Both the position numbers and the translations under genes were made by a program. DNA of 64,000 bases, taken from Vicugna vicugna (lineage: Eukaryota). Positions 2,625 through 43,200 of this stretch are shown here, piece by piece. The notes beneath the pieces are model-generated. The model did no database searches. It saw only the letters and a list, made by a program, of their open reading frames with translations, and had not been told where the DNA came from. The DNA lies in NCBI GenBank assembly GCA_013265495.1, contig MU059881.1:1-64000 (forward strand), read 5' to 3'. Position 1 is the first letter of the stretch, and each line of letters begins with the position of its first letter.

Positions 2625-3176
2625 AATGTGTCCTCAAAAACTGGAACATAAGACGACCATACGACCCAGCAATTCTATTCCAGGTGTGTACCCACGTAAA
2701 CTAAAAACCTGTACACACAGGCTCATAGCAGCATCAGTCACTGTCGCCAAAAGGTGGGAACAATCCAAATGTCCACCAGCTGATGATGGATAAACAAAAT
2801 GTGATCTCTCTGTAAGATGGAGAATGATCGTGAAAAGGAATGATGTTCTGGGACACACTGCAACGCGGATGAATTTTGAAAACAGTGTGGTAAGTGACTG
2901 AAGGCTGTGGTTACGAAAGAGCACAGAGTGTGTGACTTCATTTATATCAAATGTCTGGAGCGGGCATCGGCATAGAGACAGTGGCAGATGAGTGGGTGCC
3001 GGAGATGGAGGGAAACAGGGAAGGGGAGTAAGTGCTCAACGTGTGTAGGGTGTCCTTCTGGGGTCATGAAATGTTCGGAGACTAGACAGGCCACAGTCGC
3101 ACAACACTCTGGATGTGCTACATACCACCAAGTAATTTTGTGTTAAGTGAATTTTACTTCAATTAGAAAAAAAGAG
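2625..3176 (+). mobile_element. Old LINE-1 (L1M-type) 3' fragment
   Basis: Typical L1 ORF2-end/3'UTR text (ccatacgacccagcaattc..., aaatgtccaccagctgatga, ttttgtgttaagtgaattttacttcaattagaaaaaaa). Confidence 0.8.
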
Positions 3177-5388
3177 TCAAACGTACAAGTTGTAGCACCT
3201 TGGCCCAGAGTAGGAGCAACTGTCCGCTCTCTTCCCGGAGGGCCTGTGAAGGGTGGGAACAGCCCCCCAGCCCCCCACACCCGCTTCACTGTGAATTAAT
3301 CCACTCTTTGGATAAGAACAGCTGCAGTCAGGTCGGCCTTTGGTGGAAACGCTGTCCCCGCGTTGCACACAGTCACCGGGTGATTCGTCTCCGGAGCCCA
3401 AAGCAGCACCACAAACAAGGCCGCTCGTCTGCAGTCGCAGCCTGGGCTCCTGCGGACGCGCGTTCCCCTTGGGTGTCCCAGGTTGCATGAAAAACAGCTC
3501 GGCATTGTTGACCAGCAACTGCATTTACCTGGGAGCCATCGTCTTATCAGGCGACTCTGCACCGGCCCTGGGAGTGAGGACGTGGCGCGTTTCTCTGAGG
3601 AGCGAGGCCGAGCGCAGAGGACAGAGCACGGGCCAGCGAGGGTGGGGCCCAGAGCAGGCGAGATGGATGAGAACTTGGGGCATCTGACCTTCTGCAGCTC
3701 AGGCGCCTTCCAGAAACATCTCCGCGGTGCTGACAGCGTTCCCAGCCCTGCAGGGGCCAAAGCGCGGTCAGGGGACGTCCACCGTGGCTTTTCCACCCAG
3801 TGGGGCAGGGCTGGGGTCCTCTGATTTCCGAGGGGAGCAGGGACAGGACTGACTTGTCCTGGTATCCTGTGCTGACAGGAGGTCAAAGGGCACGGTCAAG
3901 ACACCTGTCCACATTGCTGACCAAACCAGGCCTGTGCTCCCCCCGCCCCAGAGGGGCCCAGCCAGTCCCAGCCACCCTCCCTGGGACGTGGGGGCGTCTT
4001 TGTGTTGCGGGAGCCTCTGTTTCTGGGGTGGCCCATGGTCCCCAGTGCCCAGCCTTTGGGCACTTGGTGGAAACACTGCAGGAATAAACAAAGTGTCTCC
4101 ACAAACTGTCCCTTGTTGGGGGCAATGTGGGTGAAGGTACGTGCCTGCTTCAGGAAGAGGGGACCCTGCCCCAGTCTGCAGACGAAAATCTGGTAACATT
4201 ACTGGGGCTTCTCTGGAACTTTCTGTGTCAGGCAGGGAAAACAACGGGACTGAGACTCCCCTACCCCAGCTTCAAGGCGGGCAGGCACTCAAGGTGGCAG
4301 GCATCCCCACTGCCAGAACCTGAGGAGGCGACACTGGTCCAGATGTGGCCTGTCCCGCCAGGGCCCGAGCATCCCGTGAAGGGGGTGCACCCCTCTAGAG
4401 TCCGAGCCTCTGAAGACCCAGGCCTGGGGGCCTCTAGGCCTTGTTGCTGCAGCTGCCGAGGGGCCACACCCAGACCTGAAGGGCCGCTGCAGCACAGGGC
4501 ACGTGTCCAGGGACCCAGGGCCTCACAGCACCCAGGGGACAGCTGACCACTCCTCAGCCTGAGCTGGGACTGTGGCCTGTCCCATCTTTAGTCTCCATCT
4601 TCTGGGGGCTTTAGCTTTGTGCCTGGCAGGTCACCCCGCACGGACCCCTAAGCTTTAGAAGAATCATCTCCTCCTGCCGCACCCTAGCAGCCCACAGCCC
4701 AGGCAGCCCCCTCCTCCGGCACTCCCCTCTGGACCAGCCCCTCACCGGCTCTGTAATTGGAGGTGGTGAAGTCTCTCCCCCTCACTCAGCCAGGAGACAA
4801 ACGAGGCGCCCCGCTGTTTCCTCTCCCCACTGGGTCAAACGCTCCTCCCAGGCAGAGACCAAGGTACCAGCCTCGTCTCTACGGCGCCCCGCTCCTGACC
4901 GCCAGGCGGCACCAGTGGGGTGCCAGCGCTTCACGCGCTTTGACTCCTCTAAATCTCAATGCTCCGATGAGGCAGGTTCTACATTTAGTCAGATTTTACA
5001 GAGGGGGAAGCTGAGGCACAGAGAGATGTGGTAGCTCCCCTGAGGCCACAGGTGGCAAGGAAAGGCACCCAGATTCACACCGAGGCAGCCAGAGTCCAGA
5101 CCTCTTTGGCCATCTCTGTGTCCGGCCCGGAGCCCTGCCCGACTGTGGCCTGTGCAGCAGTCCCTGTGCAGCAGGGTCAGCTGCCAGGGTCACTGAGCAG
5201 CCAGCCTGACACAGGGTCCCTGTGCAGCAGCTGGCAGTGTGTGGTGGAGCGCCACAGAGCCTTTCAGAGGGGTGAGTGGGCTCCTGTCTGTCCCGTGAGG
5301 GAAAAAAGTGCGAAAGGAGAGCGACAGTATTATTCCATTTAGAACATTTTAAAGCACGTTATTAATGGCCTGTGGAAAAGACCTGATC

Positions 5389-8607: not shown

Positions 8608-8915
8608 NNNNNNNNNNNNNNNNNNNNNNNNNNNNNNNNNNNNNNNNNNNNNNNNNNNNNNNNNNNNNNNNNNNNNNNNNNNNNNNNNNNNNNNNNNNNN
8701 NNNNNNNNNNNNNNNNNNNNNNNNNNNNNNNNNNNNNNNNNNNNNNNNNNNNNNNNNNNNNNNNNNNNNNNNNNNNNNNNNNNNNNNNNNNNNNNNNNNN
8801 NNNNNNNNNNNNNNNNNNNNNNNNNNNNNNNNNNNNNNNNNNNNNNNNNNNNNNNNNNNNNNNNNNNNNNNNNNNNNNNNNNNNNNNNNNNNNNNNNNNN
8901 NNNNNNNNNNNNNNN
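8608..8915. other. Assembly gap (308 N) within the UTS2R CpG island
   Basis: Run of N directly visible; both flanks are very GC/CpG-rich. Confidence 0.99.
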
Positions 8916-34900: not shown

Positions 34901-36289
34901 GGGATTCACACTGCCTGTGCAGCTGTTGCAGGCATGTCTGTATGTGTGTGCACACGTATGCCTGTGCATACACGTCTCCCTGTGTTTGGGTGACGTATAC
35001 GCATGCATACGTGTGTCTATGTATGTGCACGTGTGCTCTGCTATCTAAGAAAATCATGCAGGGCTTGAAGGACTGGGAGCAACGAGAAGAGAGATCCAGT
35101 CACCCTTCCATGGAGGTGCACCTTGTTTCTTCAAGTATATGATTAATTCCTAAAAAGCAGGAGCCTGCTTTTTTTTTTGTATGTCCCGCCACACTTTGAA
35201 TTGCTGTATAAATAACACCCAGATTATGATTAAATAAGTCCCAAGGTGGCACAGCTCAGTCAGACCATGCTGGGTGCACACACGATCATTTAAAACAGGG
35301 AGTACAGATGCCCAGCTCACAAAGACCCCCACCCCTAGAAATGCTGTCCAGCATCCAGCCCACCTAGCCTCCTCTGATTAGACCAGGGTGGACACCTAAC
35401 TCCAGCGGGCCCATCATTTCTCTTCCCCAAGAATTCCTAACAGAGGGAGGCTGCCAGCTCCTCTCAGCCACAGGTGGCTGGAACCCTAAACTACAGGGGC
35501 AAAGCCGCGGGGGACACGTTCTCCTGAGACACCCCGGCCGCTGGGACAGAAAGGGATGGAAAGGGAGGTGCAGAGACGAGAGGGGAAAACAGCCTCCTGG
35601 GCCATATTCGAACGCCCCTTCCCCTCGGGGGTCTCCTCAAAATAAGCACCCCTGTCCATGGTAATCTGGCTCAAGCAGCACCCCGAGAATCTTGCCAGAA
35701 CGGAAGGGGATTTGGACGGGACAAGCACGACGACACAGTGATTCGTCCCGGAGTGATTAAAATACACTCTGGCCTGAAAGCTTCGGGCAGACTCCCCTCG
35801 AAGGCTACGTGTGAGCTCACGTACTCATTCATTGGGTCACTCAACGAGGAACCCCCATGTGCACACCCTAAGGAAAGCACGCAGAGACCAGACGACGGGG
35901 CCTCGGAGCCCCGTCCCCGTGCGGGAGGCCCGGCGCGGAGCCCTCGGTACCCACGGGGGAGGGGCGTCGGGGAAGGTTTCCCACCCCGCTGCCCTCCCCC
36001 TCCAATCGCGCGCCCCGGGCGTGATTCTGCAGGCCACGCCCTTCGGGTAGACCACGCCCTCTAGGCGTGCGGTTCGCCCAGCACATGCCACGCCCCTCGC
36101 GATCGGGCCGCACCCACACTACAGCCCCGCCCCCAGAAGAGGCCCGCCCCAGCCCCAGCCCCTCTCGGCCAGGCCCCACCCACCCTGTCCGCCTGCTCCC
36201 CTCGCCGCCCAGTACCTGCTCGGTCGCCGGCGCTCGGCCGCCCCGCTGCCCTCGGGCGCCTTGGGCGCGCCCCTCCGCTGAGGTGCCAT
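19910..36289 (-). CDS. OGFOD3: 2-oxoglutarate and iron-dependent oxygenase domain-containing protein 3, 315 aa, 9 coding exons
   Basis: Exons (-): 36216-36289, 34152-34369, 32037-32112, 31084-31126, 29077-29141, 28490-28546, 24737-24890, 21511-21634, 19910-20046. All introns are GT-AG and the total is 948 nt in frame. Protein starts MAPQRRGAPKAPEG, has an N-terminal TM segment, FIEVPCSEDY, the HxD motif (YWHAHVDK), the distal His (ENLHRVEK) and TRYAIT. Confidence 0.96.
25480..25700. repeat. Imperfect (CA)/(CACG)-rich low-complexity tract in OGFOD3 intron 6
   Basis: acacggacacactggacacacatgcacaca...gcacacctgcacg; a similar tract occurs at about 34730-35035. Confidence 0.7.
28169..28208. repeat. 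Perfect 20-bp tandem duplication
   Basis: GGGCTGAGCCCGTGACACGA x2. Confidence 0.9.
33105..33275 (-). mobile_element. L1MB-like 3' end fragment
   Basis: tttaccacttaaactgtctttagcatacagttcaggggcattaactacattcacactgttgtgtagccaccacc is the typical reverse L1M 3' terminus. Confidence 0.7.
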
Positions 36290-36703
36290 CGGCTAGGCCG
36301 CCGGGGAGCCAGGCCGAACGCGGGAGCCGCCGCGAGCCGGGACGAGCGCCGCGAGAGGGAGCGCGAGGCCGGCGCGGCCAGGGACACGAGCGACGCGCTC
36401 GGCCGTCGACCTCCGGGCTGGTGGCAGGCCCGAGCAATCGGAGGCCGAGTGCCGAGCGGGGCGGGGACCCGAGTGCGGGCCCGGCGCGCACCCCGCCCGC
36501 GCCGCGCCCGCCCCGGCCGGACCTGCGCTTCTCCCCTGCGCTCCGCGGAACCGGACGGGCCTCCGCGCCTCCGTGTGACGAGCGTCCTCGCCCCGCCGTG
36601 CGCGCTCTCCCGGGGGCCCGTGCCCTCTCCGGGGTCTCCACGTCCCCTTCCCGGGCCCGCGCCACGCCGAGGGCACTGGGTCCAGTTGACGCTCAGCACA
36701 CAG
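35890..36703. promoter_or_regulatory. Bidirectional CpG-island promoter of OGFOD3 (-) and HEXD (+)
   Basis: Dense CpG. OGFOD3 ATG at 36289 (-). Candidate donor of the HEXD non-coding exon CAG|GTATCC at 36704; acceptor ctctAG before 37214. Confidence 0.85.
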
Positions 36704-37271
36704 GTATCCCTAAGGCCTTGCTGCTGCTGTTACAGCTTTCAGCTTCCCTAGAGAACCTTCCGCCTAGTGGGCAAGAAGTAGGATCTTAACCAGCCCTGTC
36801 CAGATGCCTAAGATTCTGAATGAGCAGTTAGCAGTGAGGTTCATTCACGAGGATCAAGTCTGAAAAAGGTGCATAATTTACTGATACAGGGGAGAAGAAA
36901 ACCTTCCTAGACTCATTGGACAAGAAAAGAGATCTGCCCAACAGTCCTGAAACGGGGAAAATCAGTGTGATCAGAGGCCATTCAGGGGCTCCACAGAGCT
37001 TACCTAGAGGCCGAGGCAGGGACAGGGACAGCTGCAGACCTGCCAGGCAGTCTGGAAACAGTAGTGACAGCTGACCCAAGCCTTTGAAATAATCTGATTT
37101 CTACACACCTCTTGCAGCAGGAATCAAAGCACAGGACCTACACGCTCACAAGACGGAACCCTGACTCTCTCTTGTTCTTTCCCTTTACACTCTGTCCTGA
37201 ATTTCTCCTCTAGGAGGAAGTGACCAGACAGGAGGAGGTTTTCATTATATGACTTCATCAAACATAGTGCA

Positions 37272-40200
37272 ATGTCGAGTTCCTCACCATTCAAGATGCG
37301 ATTAGTTCATCTGGACCTGAAAGGTGCTCCACCAAAGGTCTCCTACCTCTCGGAGGTAAGGGCTCCTTTTTTTCTCTAGAGAATCAATCACCTTCGCCTT
37401 GGGTTTGGTTTTTGAACAATGTTCTGTAAAAATGTGTGCTTAGAACACAACAGTGGGTTCTGGGTTGGGGCTCGGTGGTGACAGCAGCATAGATGTTGAA
37501 TTTCTTCCAAATCCGCTTTCAAAATAGACAGCAACCAGGAGAGCAAAAGGAAAAACAGAGAAGACAAAAGAAACCACAGCCTCTTTGTTATGAGCTGAAT
37601 CCTGTCTCACGGACAGTTTTTCTTAATTCTTAACCCCTCGGACTTGTGAATGTGACCTGATTTACCGATTGGGTCTTTGCAAGTGTTATCAACACAGGAG
37701 TAGGCGCCCTAATGCAAGAGTAGTGTCTACATAAGGAAACAGACAGTGATGTGAGACATGGGGGTGGGTGGCAGGGCAAGTGGGGCAGAGGCAGATTGGA
37801 AGCCCAAGGAGGAGGGCCAAGGGTGCTGGCATCTACCAGAAGCTGGAAGCAGCAGGAAGGATTCCCCCGACAGCCTTCTGAGAGAGCACGGCCCTGCTAA
37901 CACCTAGATTTGGGACTTCTGCCTCCAGAACTGTGGCAGAATAAACTCTTATCGTTTGAAGCCACCCGGATTGTGGTGATCTGTTCCAGCAGCTGTAGGA
38001 AACTCATGTACTCTAAAACAAATGTAGGTAACGGGATGACCCCACGAGTTCCAAAATGCAAGGGGATGGGGCCAAACCACAGACAGTATAACACTCATGT
38101 GGAACCAGAAGCCGGAGAGAGGTGGTGGAGGCAAGAGAAAGAGGAATTTCGATGCTGTCAAGACTGGAGGACCCAGAAAATAGCCCCACAGTAAGGGTCT
38201 GTCGAGATAAACTGGGGAAAGGCTTCACTGGCTCCAGGTCGAGGGCAAGTGCAGAAAGACTCAAAGGAGGGAGCTGGAGGCCCAAGGCCTCAGGGCTTGA
38301 AGAGATAAAAGTGTGTTAGGCAGAGAGGACCCAGCTTCCTTGTAACTGGAATCCCTGTTCCGTTACCTGCTGTGCTGATGGACCCCGAGACTTAGAGGTT
38401 CAGACAACAATGTTTACTCCTCCGTTCCCATGGGTTGGCTCGGTGGCTCTGGTCTGCCTTGGGCTCCCTGGGGGCTGCAGCCCCATGATGGTCCCAGGTG
38501 GCTTCAGCCCCCATCCGGCATCAGTGCTGACGGTCGGCTGGACACCATGGCCCTTCTCCACAGGGGTCTCGTCCTCTCGGAGGCCAGGTCACCAGGCAGT
38601 GCTTCGAGAGCCGGGGGCCAGACCTGCTAGCCTCCCGGGGGCCTGGAGTTGCTCCTGGTAAGAGGAGTCCACGGTCAGCCTAGATTCAAGGCTCAGGTAG
38701 ATGCACAGTGTTGTGGCCGTGTCTTCCGTGCCCAGCAGCCCTCCAGAGCGGAGACGCCACAGCTCAGAACACTGCACCGAGATCGAAGGATACCTGCACC
38801 TGCGTGTTGACTGGGCATACCCCGTGCCTGGAGGATTTACCTGCAGCGACTTACACCAGGGAATCGCTCAGGAAACGTACCAGACTTCAGAGAAAATGAA
38901 CGTGAGAAAGCCTTTGGGCACACAAGCAGCCCAAGTCATGCACAGGAAGAGAGTCAGGTTGCATCAGGTGGTTTTTTTCAGGCAAGAGGGTAGGATCTAC
39001 TGGTGGTCGTGAGTAAGGAGAGGGGACAGTGCCAAGGCTCTTGGGAGTCCAGGGGCCACGACTCGGGATGTATCCGACCCCACAGCCATCCGGGATGAGC
39101 TGCTTTTCTGCCACCACGTCTTCACGTTCATCTGCATTAAACTTGGTATGTCCCCACTTCCTGGAGCTCTGGGTCTAGGGAGAGGCAGGAAGAGCTGAGT
39201 CAGGAGGCCTGGGCATTGGGGCAAGGGAAGGCAAGCCCAAGGCTGCAGCACACTGACCTTGTGGCGGCCAGGGAACCTGAACTTGGCCCCGCATAGGGCC
39301 TCCATCACATGCTGCCTGTTCCGCAGCTGGTCCGGGTGGATGTGAGGCCTGGCCACCGTGCCCCGGGACTTTCCAGAGGCACCCATGTACCTGTCTGGAG
39401 CCTAGACTGGGGACAGCATGAGGTCAGACATGAATGTCCACAGTGAAGGGCCGTGTCCGGGTCCCTTAGGGTGGCCCATGCAGGTAGCAGGCTGCACATA
39501 CCACCGTGGAGGCTGCTGTTTGCAGACACTGCGCTCCAGGCCCCACGGAGAAAAGAGCATGGTGGGCTTAACTGGCTGCAAAGGATCAGATATTGTGACA
39601 GAAGATAAGGGTCAGGGTCAGGGTTAGGGTCGGGAGATGTATTTAAAATACTCAGAAAAATAAATAATGAATCAAGGATTTTGTATCCAGCCAAACTGAC
39701 CTCTAGGTATAAAGGCCACAGACCAACTATTACAAACATCCAAGAACCAAGCGAGCTTTCTGGGGAATAAGCTTCAGCTGCAGCATCAGGACAGGCGAAA
39801 TCAAGTGACTGCAGGGAGGAAGTCCTGTCAGGAGTTCCAGCTGGAGACACAGGAGGGGCGACGGCACTGGACGGTCTCCACCTGGCGACTCTTTGGCGCT
39901 GGCTGGGTAACAGTGGTCAGCGGTTGTAAAACCACTAGGGTCCAGGGTGGATCTGACTGAGGCCCCCTGAACCCACTGGTCAGCCCAACATCACTCCAGT
40001 GGGACAGCCAGACTTGAGTCTTCTAGAACCACCTGTGAGATATTGCCAAAAAAGGAAGCCAGACCCTTAGCACGCCTCCATCTCTGACCGCCTGCGTGCA
40101 CAGGAACGGCAGGCACACGGAGGGCTGTCTTGAGAATACTGCCCAGCAAAGCCACAGTTTAGGAACCTGTACAAAACAAATCACTTGGATTTATCAACAA

Positions 40201-43200
40201 ACACGTTGGGAAAAAAAAAGCACAGGGGTTGTTGAAAATCAAAAGACCCTTAAAAAGATCCATTCCGAAAAATGCAGCTTTGGACCTTGTCTGGATCGGG
40301 TTCAAACAAGCCGCCTGTGGAAAGATTCCACTGACAGGAAGATCTGGACCTGAGCGACACCAGGGAATTACTTGTCTGGGTGTCAGAGTGCTGTTGTGGT
40401 CGTGCCCTGTTTTGATAAGTCTTCATCAGAGATAAACAGGTGACCCTTGAACAACGTGGGAGTTAGGGGCTCTGACCCTCCACGCAGTTGAAATTGCCTG
40501 CAACCTGGAGCTGGTCCTCCGTAGCACAATTTGTCCACATCCACTGTTCCACAGTCACGGATCCAACCAGCCGCGGACCGTGCAGCACTGTAGTGCCTGT
40601 TCGGTGACAGAAGTCCGCGTATGGGTGGACTCATGAAGTTCAAACTTGTGTTGTTCAAGGGCCAACTGTGTACTGAACTGTTCATAGGTGAAAAAATACA
40701 CTGTCTGAGATTTGCTTTAAAATGTTCCATTCGCAGAGGAAAAGTGGAAATTAGGTGAAATGAAATTGGCACAGTGTTGAACCTGAATGCTGGAGGCGTG
40801 AGGGCTCGTGGTATAGCACTCCTGCATTTGTGCATTCGATAAAAACCTCCTCCGCCCCACTCCAGTGCCTGGATGCAGGAGAGGGACGTGTATCGGTGAC
40901 TCTCGGGCAGCTGGGACTCCCAGGTCCCTCCGGCTGAGCTTAGCAGCCTCTCAACCACCCATAGCACAAGCCCCCCCACAACAAACATCAAGGAGGCCGC
41001 CCTGTGGGCAGATGGCCCAGCAGCTGCGAGGGAAACAGAAGCAGAAACGCTGGGAAAAGTGTGAAAATGCTGTAACCGGCGTGTCTCATCTGTGCACACA
41101 TCCAGCCTGCGTCAGTGACTCCTTCCACGCTCCGTCCTACTTGTAGTTTTCAGTCAGTGTTGCTCACCCATTTCGTGAATTGCCAGCTGATCTCCCTGTC
41201 CACCCAGCATGGTTCAGAACGTCCCGCGTTCTTGGGGAGAGAAAGCTGAGACGGGGCAAAATCAACGAGGGCGCTGCGGTCATGCCAAGTCCACCACCGC
41301 CCTTGTCTGGAGGTGGCTGTGCTATTCTAAGTGTCTGCCGGGCGTCCCCTCCCTCAGTGCCACCCTGAACTTGGCGCCAGGCTGGAAGACAATCTCAGGG
41401 CTGTGCGCAGTAGTGTGAGCTAGTTCTGAAAATCCTGGAGAACAGGAATTCATGTCCTGTGAAGTAAAGGCAGAGAGAGAGGTGGGAGAACCGGGGAGGC
41501 CCCTGAGCCAGCAGGACCGCCTGTTTGCTCCCGCATCTCCCTCCTCTGTGGCTCCTCCCAGGCGCTCACCTCCAACTCTTCAGGCCCCCGAGGCCCCCCC
41601 AGCCCAGCCCCCAGCTCCCTGTGCTCTAGAAGCTCCCCACCCCCCCATGCTGCTCTCCTTGACGACGAGCCGTCTGTCCCTGCCCAGCCCGGCCACCAGG
41701 CAGCTGCGGCTCCGCAGCGCACTGTCTCCCTGCCCCTGCCGTGTCAAGTGAACACGTCACCGCGGTAGAGTTTGACTTGATGTAACTCAGAGTTCACGTT
41801 CCAGGTGACGAGTTTCCAGGGAAATACGGAGCTCTGCAGTCCCGGTCCACAAGCTGGAAGTCTGTGGCAGCACATGTGTCACTCCCCGTCCACGTCACTT
41901 CTTCACGGCATCCCCATCTCTCCCCAGATTTTCCCCCTGTTCCGGGCCCTGGGTGCAGACGGCCTCCTCATCGAATATGAAGACATGTTTCCCTACGAGG
42001 GCCCCCTTAGGTTGCTGCGGGCCGAGCACGCGTACAGGTACCCCGGCCACCTTGGCGGAGCCGGAGGGGTTTGCGGGGGGTGGGGGGGCAGGCAAGAGCT
42101 GAACCCAGGACACCCTCTCCGGTGTCTTCAAATGCACATCTTTAATCATCAGAGTAAAGCAACTTCACTGAAGGAATTTGGAACCATTTAAAAGAGAAAG
42201 AAAACGGAGGGGAGGGTGCAGCTCGGGGGTGGAGCGTGTGCTTAGCAGGCACGAGGTCCGAGGTCCTTGGTTCCATCCCCAGCACCTCAGTTAAAATAAA
42301 TAAATAAATCTACTTACTTCCCGTCCTCCAAAAAACAAAACAATAATAAATTAAAGAAACAGAAGAGAAGGGTCAGCTCTGGTTCCCCTCAAGGAAGCGC
42401 AGTAACCCATGCATCAGTCTCGTCTTTTGGTACGAAGTGTGTACAGAACACAGCCAGGGTCCCCGCGGCGGAAGGACTGCTCTTTAAGATCACGAGCGGG
42501 TCTTCATCAGGGAAGTGGAGAGTGGAGGGGAGTGGAGGGGGTCAGTGAGGTCAGGGTGGTCACCGGTGCACCCTGCCTGGCCTTAAAGTGATGGATGTCT
42601 CTATAAATCAGCAACAAATAGCCCGAAAGGAAAATGGGCAAAGAACATCTGATCCCAGAAAAGAAAGAAAAGTGGCCAATAATCCTATGATAGTAATAAA
42701 TAAAACAATGAAGTGCCATTCTGGCCACCAAACTGTGAAGCCTTTAGAAAAATTATAACGTTCCGTGCCCACGAGGGTGAGAAAAGGCAACCCTCTTGCT
42801 GGTGGCCTGGGGGGCGGTTTGACTCCGCGAGTGTGCGTGTGCACACGTGTGTTGTGCGTGTGTGGACGGGAAACGGGAATGGCGTGCACCAGAGCCGAGA
42901 TGCTGTGAGGTTGCCCGAGGTGTTGGTGTTTCTCCCTACAGTGAACAGGATTTGTTCCTTTGTTCCTTTAAGTGGCAAAGGTGGCAGGGTTCTGGGAAGT
43001 TAGAAAAAAGGTATATTTAAAGACAGAATTCTATGTTGCTGATACATTTATAGAACTGGTTAACTGTAGAGATGGTTCAAACACGTACAGAAACTGAGAT
43101 AAATTCACAAGTGACAACTCACGATGGAGCGGGCAGGGGCCCTTCTGGGGTGGCGTCCTCACTGGCCTTGGCGGGGAACGCCGGCCTGGAGGGCCCGCAG

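Follow-up and report, generated by a model that had tools for sequence, protein, structure and literature searches.

A semi-processed SNORA70-RPL10 retrocopy, very probably a Type-3 U70 snoRNA retroposon, antisense within HEXD of Vicugna vicugna

The first 64,000 nucleotides of contig MU059881.1 of Vicugna vicugna (assembly GCA_013265495.1; this whole stretch is hereafter the window) contain, within an intron of the hexosaminidase D gene HEXD and on the opposite strand (39583-38972, minus), an H/ACA small nucleolar RNA (snoRNA) of the SNORA70 (U70) type followed by the 3′ portion of RPL10, a ribosomal protein gene, intron sequence included. The locus raises the question of what kind of molecule such a piece was copied from, and whether the snoRNA that it carries still works. 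A reading of the sequence only had proposed that the template was a polyadenylated but still unspliced RPL10 pre-mRNA. Our analysis leads us to regard the element, with considerable confidence, as a semi-processed Type-3 U70 snoRNA retroposon (snoRT); the family has been known since 2006, and the only uncommon feature of the window copy is its retained 83-nt last intron.

Anatomy of the element and its parent gene

The minus strand was read from 39800 to 38800, positions 36000-42000 were scanned with Rfam and 38900-39700 was searched against the animal's own assembly. Infernal returned a SNORA70 match (RF00156) covering the full model (positions 1-135) at 39449-39581 on the minus strand (87.9 bits, E value 1.4e-16, gathering score 40). 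Besides the window itself, the assembly search returned a single match that is collinear through the whole element, on contig G000:C8878, and many shorter matches elsewhere in the genome that break at one fixed point.

Contig C8878 carries the intron-containing RPL10 gene, on which Pfam Ribosomal_L16 matches exon by exon. An intact RPL10 open reading frame (ORF) from one of the genome's processed copies aligned to C8878 as separate exons at 2948-3016, 3102-3524 (two exons plus the intron between them), 4103-4270 and 4348-4497. The parental SNORA70 lies between RPL10 exons 5 and 6 (C8878:3926-4060, corresponding to L002 1503-1637; 145.5 bits), which fits the report that, from fishes to human, U70 is housed in the penultimate intron of RPL10 (Weber 2006, PMC1687206). 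The hinge of the parental snoRNA displays lineage-specific changes (ACAGTATTCTCC versus the consensus ACAGCAGCUUCC), and its score is lower than those of two of its own retrocopies.

Together, the Rfam match and the alignment to this parent bear out most of what the sequence-only reading had described on the minus strand, namely the snoRNA and RPL10 parts in native order, an intact H box, a 3′ splice site, exon 6, an 83-nt GT-AG intron, exon 7, a 3′ untranslated region (UTR) and a run of seven A residues (A7). The parts of the element are as follows.

39449-39581, minus strand: SNORA70 (U70) H/ACA snoRNA pseudogene (RF00156), 76.7 % identity to the parent snoRNA; homology starts 0-2 nt upstream (39583)
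39519-39514, minus strand: H box ACAGCA, which fits ANANNA and is kept (sequence reading and Rfam alignment)
39452-39456, minus strand: region of the ACA box, with ACG as the homologous triplet (39454-39452) and a shifted ACA at 39456-39454
39448-39402, minus strand: RPL10 intron 5 tail with the CTAG 3′ splice site at its end, 81.8 % identity to the parent (L002 1638-1681)
39401-39258, minus strand: RPL10 exon 6 remnant, 84.5 % identity, with a 17-nt deletion between 39348 and 39347 plus 1-nt indels
39257-39175, minus strand: RPL10 intron 6, retained, 83 nt, GT..AG, 73-75 % identity to the 80-nt parent intron 6 (L002 1845-1924)
39174-39041, minus strand: RPL10 exon 7 coding remnant, 85.3 % identity, with a 19-nt deletion near 39055/39054; matched at the protein level
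39040-38979, minus strand: RPL10 3′ UTR remnant, 78 % identity, ending at the poly(A) site used by other family members
38978-38972, minus strand: A7, remnant of a poly(A) tail, non-templated; A-rich tails occupy this site in sister copies

The 60 nt on either side of the element are only 38-40 % identical to the parent, which is the value of unrelated sequence; the edges of the RPL10 match are therefore sharp, and the match itself lies far beyond chance. At the 3′ edge, the parent reads ..CCTGTCC|ATCTG and has no A run, and the poly(A) signal AATAAA has decayed to AGTAGA in the window copy (39001-38996), approximately 19 nt before the edge. The element had originally been delimited as 38972-39635; its 3′ limit stands, while the 5′ limit has to be drawn in to 39583-39581, as 39584-39635 (38 % identity) is not RPL10 sequence.

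The coding part is dead, as had been proposed, on account of a 17-nt and a 19-nt deletion, 1-nt indels and the change of the TGA stop codon to CAA (39043-39041); the remnants of exons 6 and 7 are nevertheless still matched at the protein level by tblastn with the RPL10 ORF from this genome. The lesion first described, a deletion of about 19 nt in exon 6, resolves into two, the 17-nt deletion in exon 6 and the 19-nt deletion in exon 7.

On the plus strand at 39608-39634, approximately 25 nt outside the 5′ edge of the retrocopy, lie four to five telomere-like units (GGGTCA GGGTCA GGGTTA GGGTCG). This stretch falls inside the limits first drawn for the element and is not RPL10 sequence; it is also covered by a contig from a related species (run X16, record 5, 39407-39719).

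The Type-3 U70 family and the template of the window copy

Type-3 U70 snoRTs have been described as extending from the mature snoRNA 5′ end, through all of the intron downstream of it and the last two exons in processed form, to a poly(A) tail (Weber 2006, PLoS Genet 2:e205, PMC1687206). They represent the major form of RPL10 retrocopy in human (30/42; PMC1687206), and the same U70 retrogenes were listed by Luo and Li in 2006 (PMC1802619). The window copy resembles them in that it begins at the mature snoRNA 5′ end (39583-39581, with model position 1 at 39581 and 38 % identity upstream), holds the full intron 5 tail through the 3′ splice site and carries a poly(A) remnant at the polyadenylation site of the snoRNA's host gene, at an unlinked location. 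It departs from the described members, whose last two exons are processed, in having the 83-nt intron between these exons. It also differs in that no target-site duplication was recoverable around it, the best alignment of its flanks being equalled by 515 of 2000 shuffles, which is expected at approximately 15-25 % decay.

Using the parent segment as query against the genome, we retrieved 20 further copies; 18 copies, including that of the window, could be scored for intron 6. At least 21 copies, again counting the window's, start in or at the snoRNA and run through the intron 5 tail into exon 6, compared with plain processed RPL10 copies at about 10 loci. Camelids can thereby be added to the mammals whose RPL10 retrocopies are mainly Type-3 U70 snoRTs. 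Of the 21 copies, 15 have their start within parent positions 99-104, close to the mature 5′ end at 103, and the remainder are truncated inside the snoRNA, some of them at parent positions 114-149. Intron 6 has been cleanly spliced out, with exon 6 joined to exon 7, in 17 of the 18 scorable copies and is retained in the window copy only; a further three copies (L029, L038 and L041) contain nothing recognisable after exon 6. The younger copies (up to 90 % identity to the parent) possess long A tails and clear target-site duplications (e.g. AAAGATAAATGTAT / AAAGATAAATATAT), the footprint of LINE-1-mediated insertion.

That 15 independent copies have a common 5′ end at the snoRNA indicates that the 5′ end of the template was set by the snoRNA rather than by a random stop of reverse transcription. 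Rather than a full pre-mRNA, the most probable template is thus a polyadenylated RNA whose 5′ end lay at the snoRNA. As an RNA of this kind lacks the 5′ splice site of intron 5, the tail of that intron could not be removed from it, and the tail is kept in every member of the family. Intron 6, on the other hand, is still spliceable in such RNAs and is normally spliced; in the template of the window copy, it was not.

The alternative put forward by the sequence-only reading, a full-length and wholly unspliced polyadenylated RPL10 pre-mRNA, would account directly for the presence of both introns. The 5′ edge would then reflect an accidental truncation at the snoRNA, and 5′ truncation is common in LINE-1-mediated copies, including those sister copies that are truncated inside the snoRNA. 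However, a start no more than about 4 nt from the mature 5′ end of the snoRNA in 15 of 21 independent copies is not expected from random arrest, and the same pattern of 5′ ends has been reported in other mammals (Weber, PMC1687206), so that we consider this origin unlikely. What survives of the proposal is that intron 6 was unspliced; the intron 5 tail is a rule of the family. Likewise, the suggestion that 3′-end processing preceded removal of the last two introns holds for intron 6, whereas the intron 5 tail is explained by a template that started at the snoRNA.

Segmental duplication of the 3′ portion of RPL10 at the DNA level, of which the presence of introns would be the classic mark, is more improbable still, as the homology ends precisely at the poly(A) site and gives way to a non-templated A7, the flanks drop to random identity and the 5′ edge lies at the snoRNA start that is seen across the family. 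Homology past the A7 run into the sequence downstream of RPL10 was looked for and none was found; the element is therefore a retrocopy and not a DNA duplicate, as the sequence-only reading had maintained.

For a template started at the snoRNA, the following course of events can be proposed. An RPL10 transcript starting at SNORA70 in intron 5 would have continued through the rest of intron 5, exon 6, the unspliced intron 6 and exon 7, and would have been polyadenylated at the normal site. Its 5′ end may have been set by protection against 5′-to-3′ trimming by the small nucleolar ribonucleoprotein (snoRNP), as suggested by the clustering of 5′ ends throughout the family; Weber draws the same inference for a 5′ end set by the snoRNA (PMC1687206). 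Reverse transcription would have followed, most likely by the LINE-1 machinery acting in trans, judging from the tails and target-site duplications of the younger sister copies, and the product would have entered HEXD, reversed relative to the gene, within the intron downstream of the first coding exon.

Three points weigh against our interpretation. Approximately 10 nt upstream of the snoRNA bear a weak resemblance to parent intron 5 (11/14), making the 5′ end uncertain by about 10 nt. As the window copy has no target-site duplication, the involvement of LINE-1 at this locus rests on analogy. Finally, the RNA evidence considered below for the snoRNA consists of assembled contigs, mostly from runs whose RNA label was guessed and none from a small-RNA library, and so speaks against a snoRNA product only indirectly.

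Semi-processed pseudogenes and retrogenes have precedents in mouse preproinsulin I and in the TMF1 insertion in CYBB intron 1 (PMC4151081). The window copy is similar to these in being a retrocopy of an incompletely spliced, polyadenylated transcript (intron 6 is kept, an A run marks the poly(A) site and the location is unlinked), and it further resembles the TMF1 insertion in lying reversed within an early intron of its host gene, with splice sites offered by the antisense strand. Unlike them, it would derive from a template that began at an intronic snoRNA instead of at an mRNA cap, and it is associated with neither a phenotype nor a protein product. An analogy, for the template only, may be drawn with the 5′ snoRNA-capped and 3′ polyadenylated (SPA) long non-coding RNAs that Wu et al. 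reportedly described in Mol Cell in 2016. The proposed template would resemble SPA RNAs in its snoRNP-protected 5′ end and its poly(A) 3′ end; the window locus, in contrast, is itself a defunct DNA copy, and our analysis detected no RPL10 RNA of that kind.

As the sole copy to retain intron 6, the window element suggests that RPL10 RNAs started at the snoRNA can be polyadenylated and reach the LINE-1 machinery while still unspliced at intron 6. One clear case of such a template with its last intron in place provides a small datum on the relative timing of splicing and polyadenylation, as well as on the RNAs that gain access to LINE-1. Beyond this and its annotation, the element is of little importance, being an ordinary decayed member of a known family.

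Other members of the family

Several other loci recovered in the genome search merit description. The Type-3 copy at G000:C10346:15080262-15080803 (plus strand; L004/L025) has a SNORA70 score of 155.3 bits, compared with 145.5 for the parent, and a fold z of −3.54; decay has brought its exon 7 down to 80 % and its UTR to 60 %. It is sense-oriented within an intron of a HEXA/HEXB-type GH20 gene (PF14845 exon at 15064263, PF00728 exons at 15083646-15087486) and is probably a live, host-switched SNORA70 paralog. The Type-3 copy at G000:C7737:2705682-2706214 (plus strand; L005/L030) possesses a near-consensus snoRNA (150.2 bits, 91 % identity to the parent) and has more decayed exons (85-89 %). 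Two loci, G000:C3773:16055531-16055713 and G000:C5318:942982-943154, comprise the snoRNA and intron 5 tail only (parent positions approximately 100-283) without exon 6, and may be Type-2-like snoRTs or truncated copies. When the two other GH20 loci were compared with the window, the RPL10/SNORA70 retrocopy was the only sequence shared, and no paralogous exons were found.

Age of the insertion

With an exon identity of 84-85 %, the window copy matches the older half of the family in divergence, without being its oldest member; the 75 % identity returned for the whole element in searches is lowered by gap columns. The K80 distance to the parent is about 0.17-0.18 for the exons and 0.30-0.36 for the snoRNA and intron 6.

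In public runs under five species labels, the stretch is nearly identical to that of the window. The contigs of runs X16 (a sixth label), X17 and X29 display common differences from the window, and cover the whole 2 kb at about 2-4 % divergence. These related-species contigs include the retrocopy with its intron 6; record 4 of X16, for example, spans 39116-39417 and is without only 39164-39179, at the intron 6/exon 7 junction. The presence of the retrocopy in a related species at this divergence places the insertion before the split of the two, and, since the exon distance exceeds their divergence several-fold, the insertion is probably much older than the split.

One further difference was apparent in the same contigs. 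At 39812-39877, the related-species sequences (X29, and a loose end in X16) contain, relative to the window, a 66-nt tandem repeat with 19 extra letters at 39877. This difference is structural and does not reflect splicing.

The snoRNA of the window copy has lost its function

The window snoRNA is not a working gene, and the loss of 18S guide function that had been suggested from the altered guide pocket and the antisense orientation is upheld by the state of the ACA box, the stems, the predicted fold and the divergence between species. The ACA box had been considered intact at 39456-39454. However, the triplet homologous to the box is the ACG at 39454-39452, and the ACA that was seen is shifted by 2 nt upstream. 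The parent has AGA at that place, and use of the shifted triplet, together with a 1-nt deletion, would leave 3 nt of the 6-nt spacer that follows the lower stem. Three related-species runs have G at 39455 on the minus strand, the parental state, versus C in the window. The shifted ACA is therefore a recent, chance and lineage-specific triplet, and the ACA box had already been lost in the common ancestor.

The remainder of the molecule shows comparable decay. Infernal analysis revealed five non-canonical stem pairs, including two of the six in the upper stem of the 3′ hairpin, next to the pocket. As the sequence-only reading had noted, the AAGGG half of the guide pocket is kept and the 5′ half GUGUA has become GUAUG, a change also seen in the Rfam alignment. 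The SNORA70 score of 87.9 bits is the lowest among the twelve copies scored (92.6 to 155.3 bits for the others), and the minimum free energy is no better than that of shuffled sequences (z +1.34, versus z −3.54 for a well-kept copy). Between the window and the related species, 4 of 133 snoRNA positions differ (3.0 %), compared with 2.2-3.5 % in adjacent sequence of the same contigs, from which the snoRNA appears to be drifting at a neutral-like rate. In X17, the only run recorded as RNA-seq, contig depth over the snoRNA is 2.8, versus 2-3.1 in the neighbouring intron; this is a weak point, as the data are assembled contigs of poly(A)-type libraries. Depth spikes of thousands at 39083-39170 were rejected as expression of this copy, as they stem from contigs of 33-55 nt of genuine RPL10 mRNA that match at 90 %.

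We therefore assign a very low probability to a SNORA70 paralog that is still functional and is produced from an antisense transcript in the HEXD intron. Its Rfam score is well above the gathering score, it retains the H box and one half of the guide pocket, and low-depth contigs from RNA libraries cover the region, but against this stand the loss of the homologous ACA in both species, with the shifted ACA confined to one lineage, the broken stem pairs and shuffle-like fold, the lowest SNORA70 score of twelve, the neutral-like divergence between species and a contig depth equal to that of the neighbouring intron. Furthermore, snoRT copies antisense to their host, as here, are classed as 'dead on arrival' (PMC1687206). 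The Rfam match at this locus, well above threshold, marks a pseudogene, and the seemingly intact ACA was a chance, lineage-specific triplet.

HEXD and a possible cryptic exon

A 391-aa open stretch on the plus strand matches hexosaminidase D of many mammals in a protein search, with the best match to alpaca, followed by camels, and exons of HEXD were mapped from 37272 onward to about 52745. A whole-genome search with Pfam PF00728 missed the HEXD gene of the window; run on single window exons, it yielded one weak match (15.7 bits). The exons on either side of the element, and a possible further exon, are as follows.

37272-37358, plus strand: HEXD first coding exon (tblastn, camelid HEXD residues 1-29)
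41925-42035, plus strand: HEXD second coding exon (tblastn, residues 28-64)
38972-39151, plus strand: possible cryptic exon, a lead only, with a T7-CAG acceptor (38972-38981), body (38982-39145) and donor TTG|GTATGT (39146-39151)

The first two of these flank the element, which lies, as had been recognised, antisense within the HEXD intron between them; to call this intron 2 presumes an untranslated exon 1.

In reverse orientation, the A tail of the retrocopy reads as the T7-CAG acceptor, and its exon 7 supplies the GTATGT donor. One contig of run X16, whose RNA label was guessed, joins 39144/5 to 39690/1 with GT..AG on the plus strand and has 29 nt on its short side. Depth in X16 is 64 for the contig ending at 39145, 31 for that starting at 39690 and approximately 12 for the sequence between. 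As a lead, this joint looks like use of the donor by a transcript in the HEXD sense; it comes from one contig of one run, and use of the acceptor was not seen among the contigs examined. We offer tentatively, as a possibility that we judge somewhat doubtful, that the reversed retrocopy has been co-opted in camelids as a cryptic exon of HEXD-sense transcripts, with the T7-CAG as acceptor and the TTG|GTATGT donor joined to 39690/39691. If so, an exon of 164 nt would shift the reading frame and give rise to a non-coding or truncated HEXD isoform.

Such an exon would parallel the TMF1 insertion in CYBB (PMC4151081) and the human Chr6 U70 snoRT, which yields an expressed sequence tag (EST) exon in the opposite orientation (PMC1687206). 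The window copy is like the latter, and like antisense Alu exons, which are exonized by way of the poly(T) tract, in the acceptor and donor provided by its antisense tail and exon, and in the use of that donor by one spliced-looking contig; it is unlike them in that a single contig from one related-species run, with its 29-nt short side, stands behind the donor joint and the acceptor was not seen in use.

A loose A run behind 40219 in X29 was considered as the poly(A) end of a transcript and rejected, since it adjoins a genomic A9 run. Rfam matches to MEG3_2 and MIR528 near the element were dismissed as chance, both being far below their gathering scores (E value about 0.5-0.6). Elsewhere in the window, a run of 308 N at 8608-8915 marks an assembly gap or a masked stretch.

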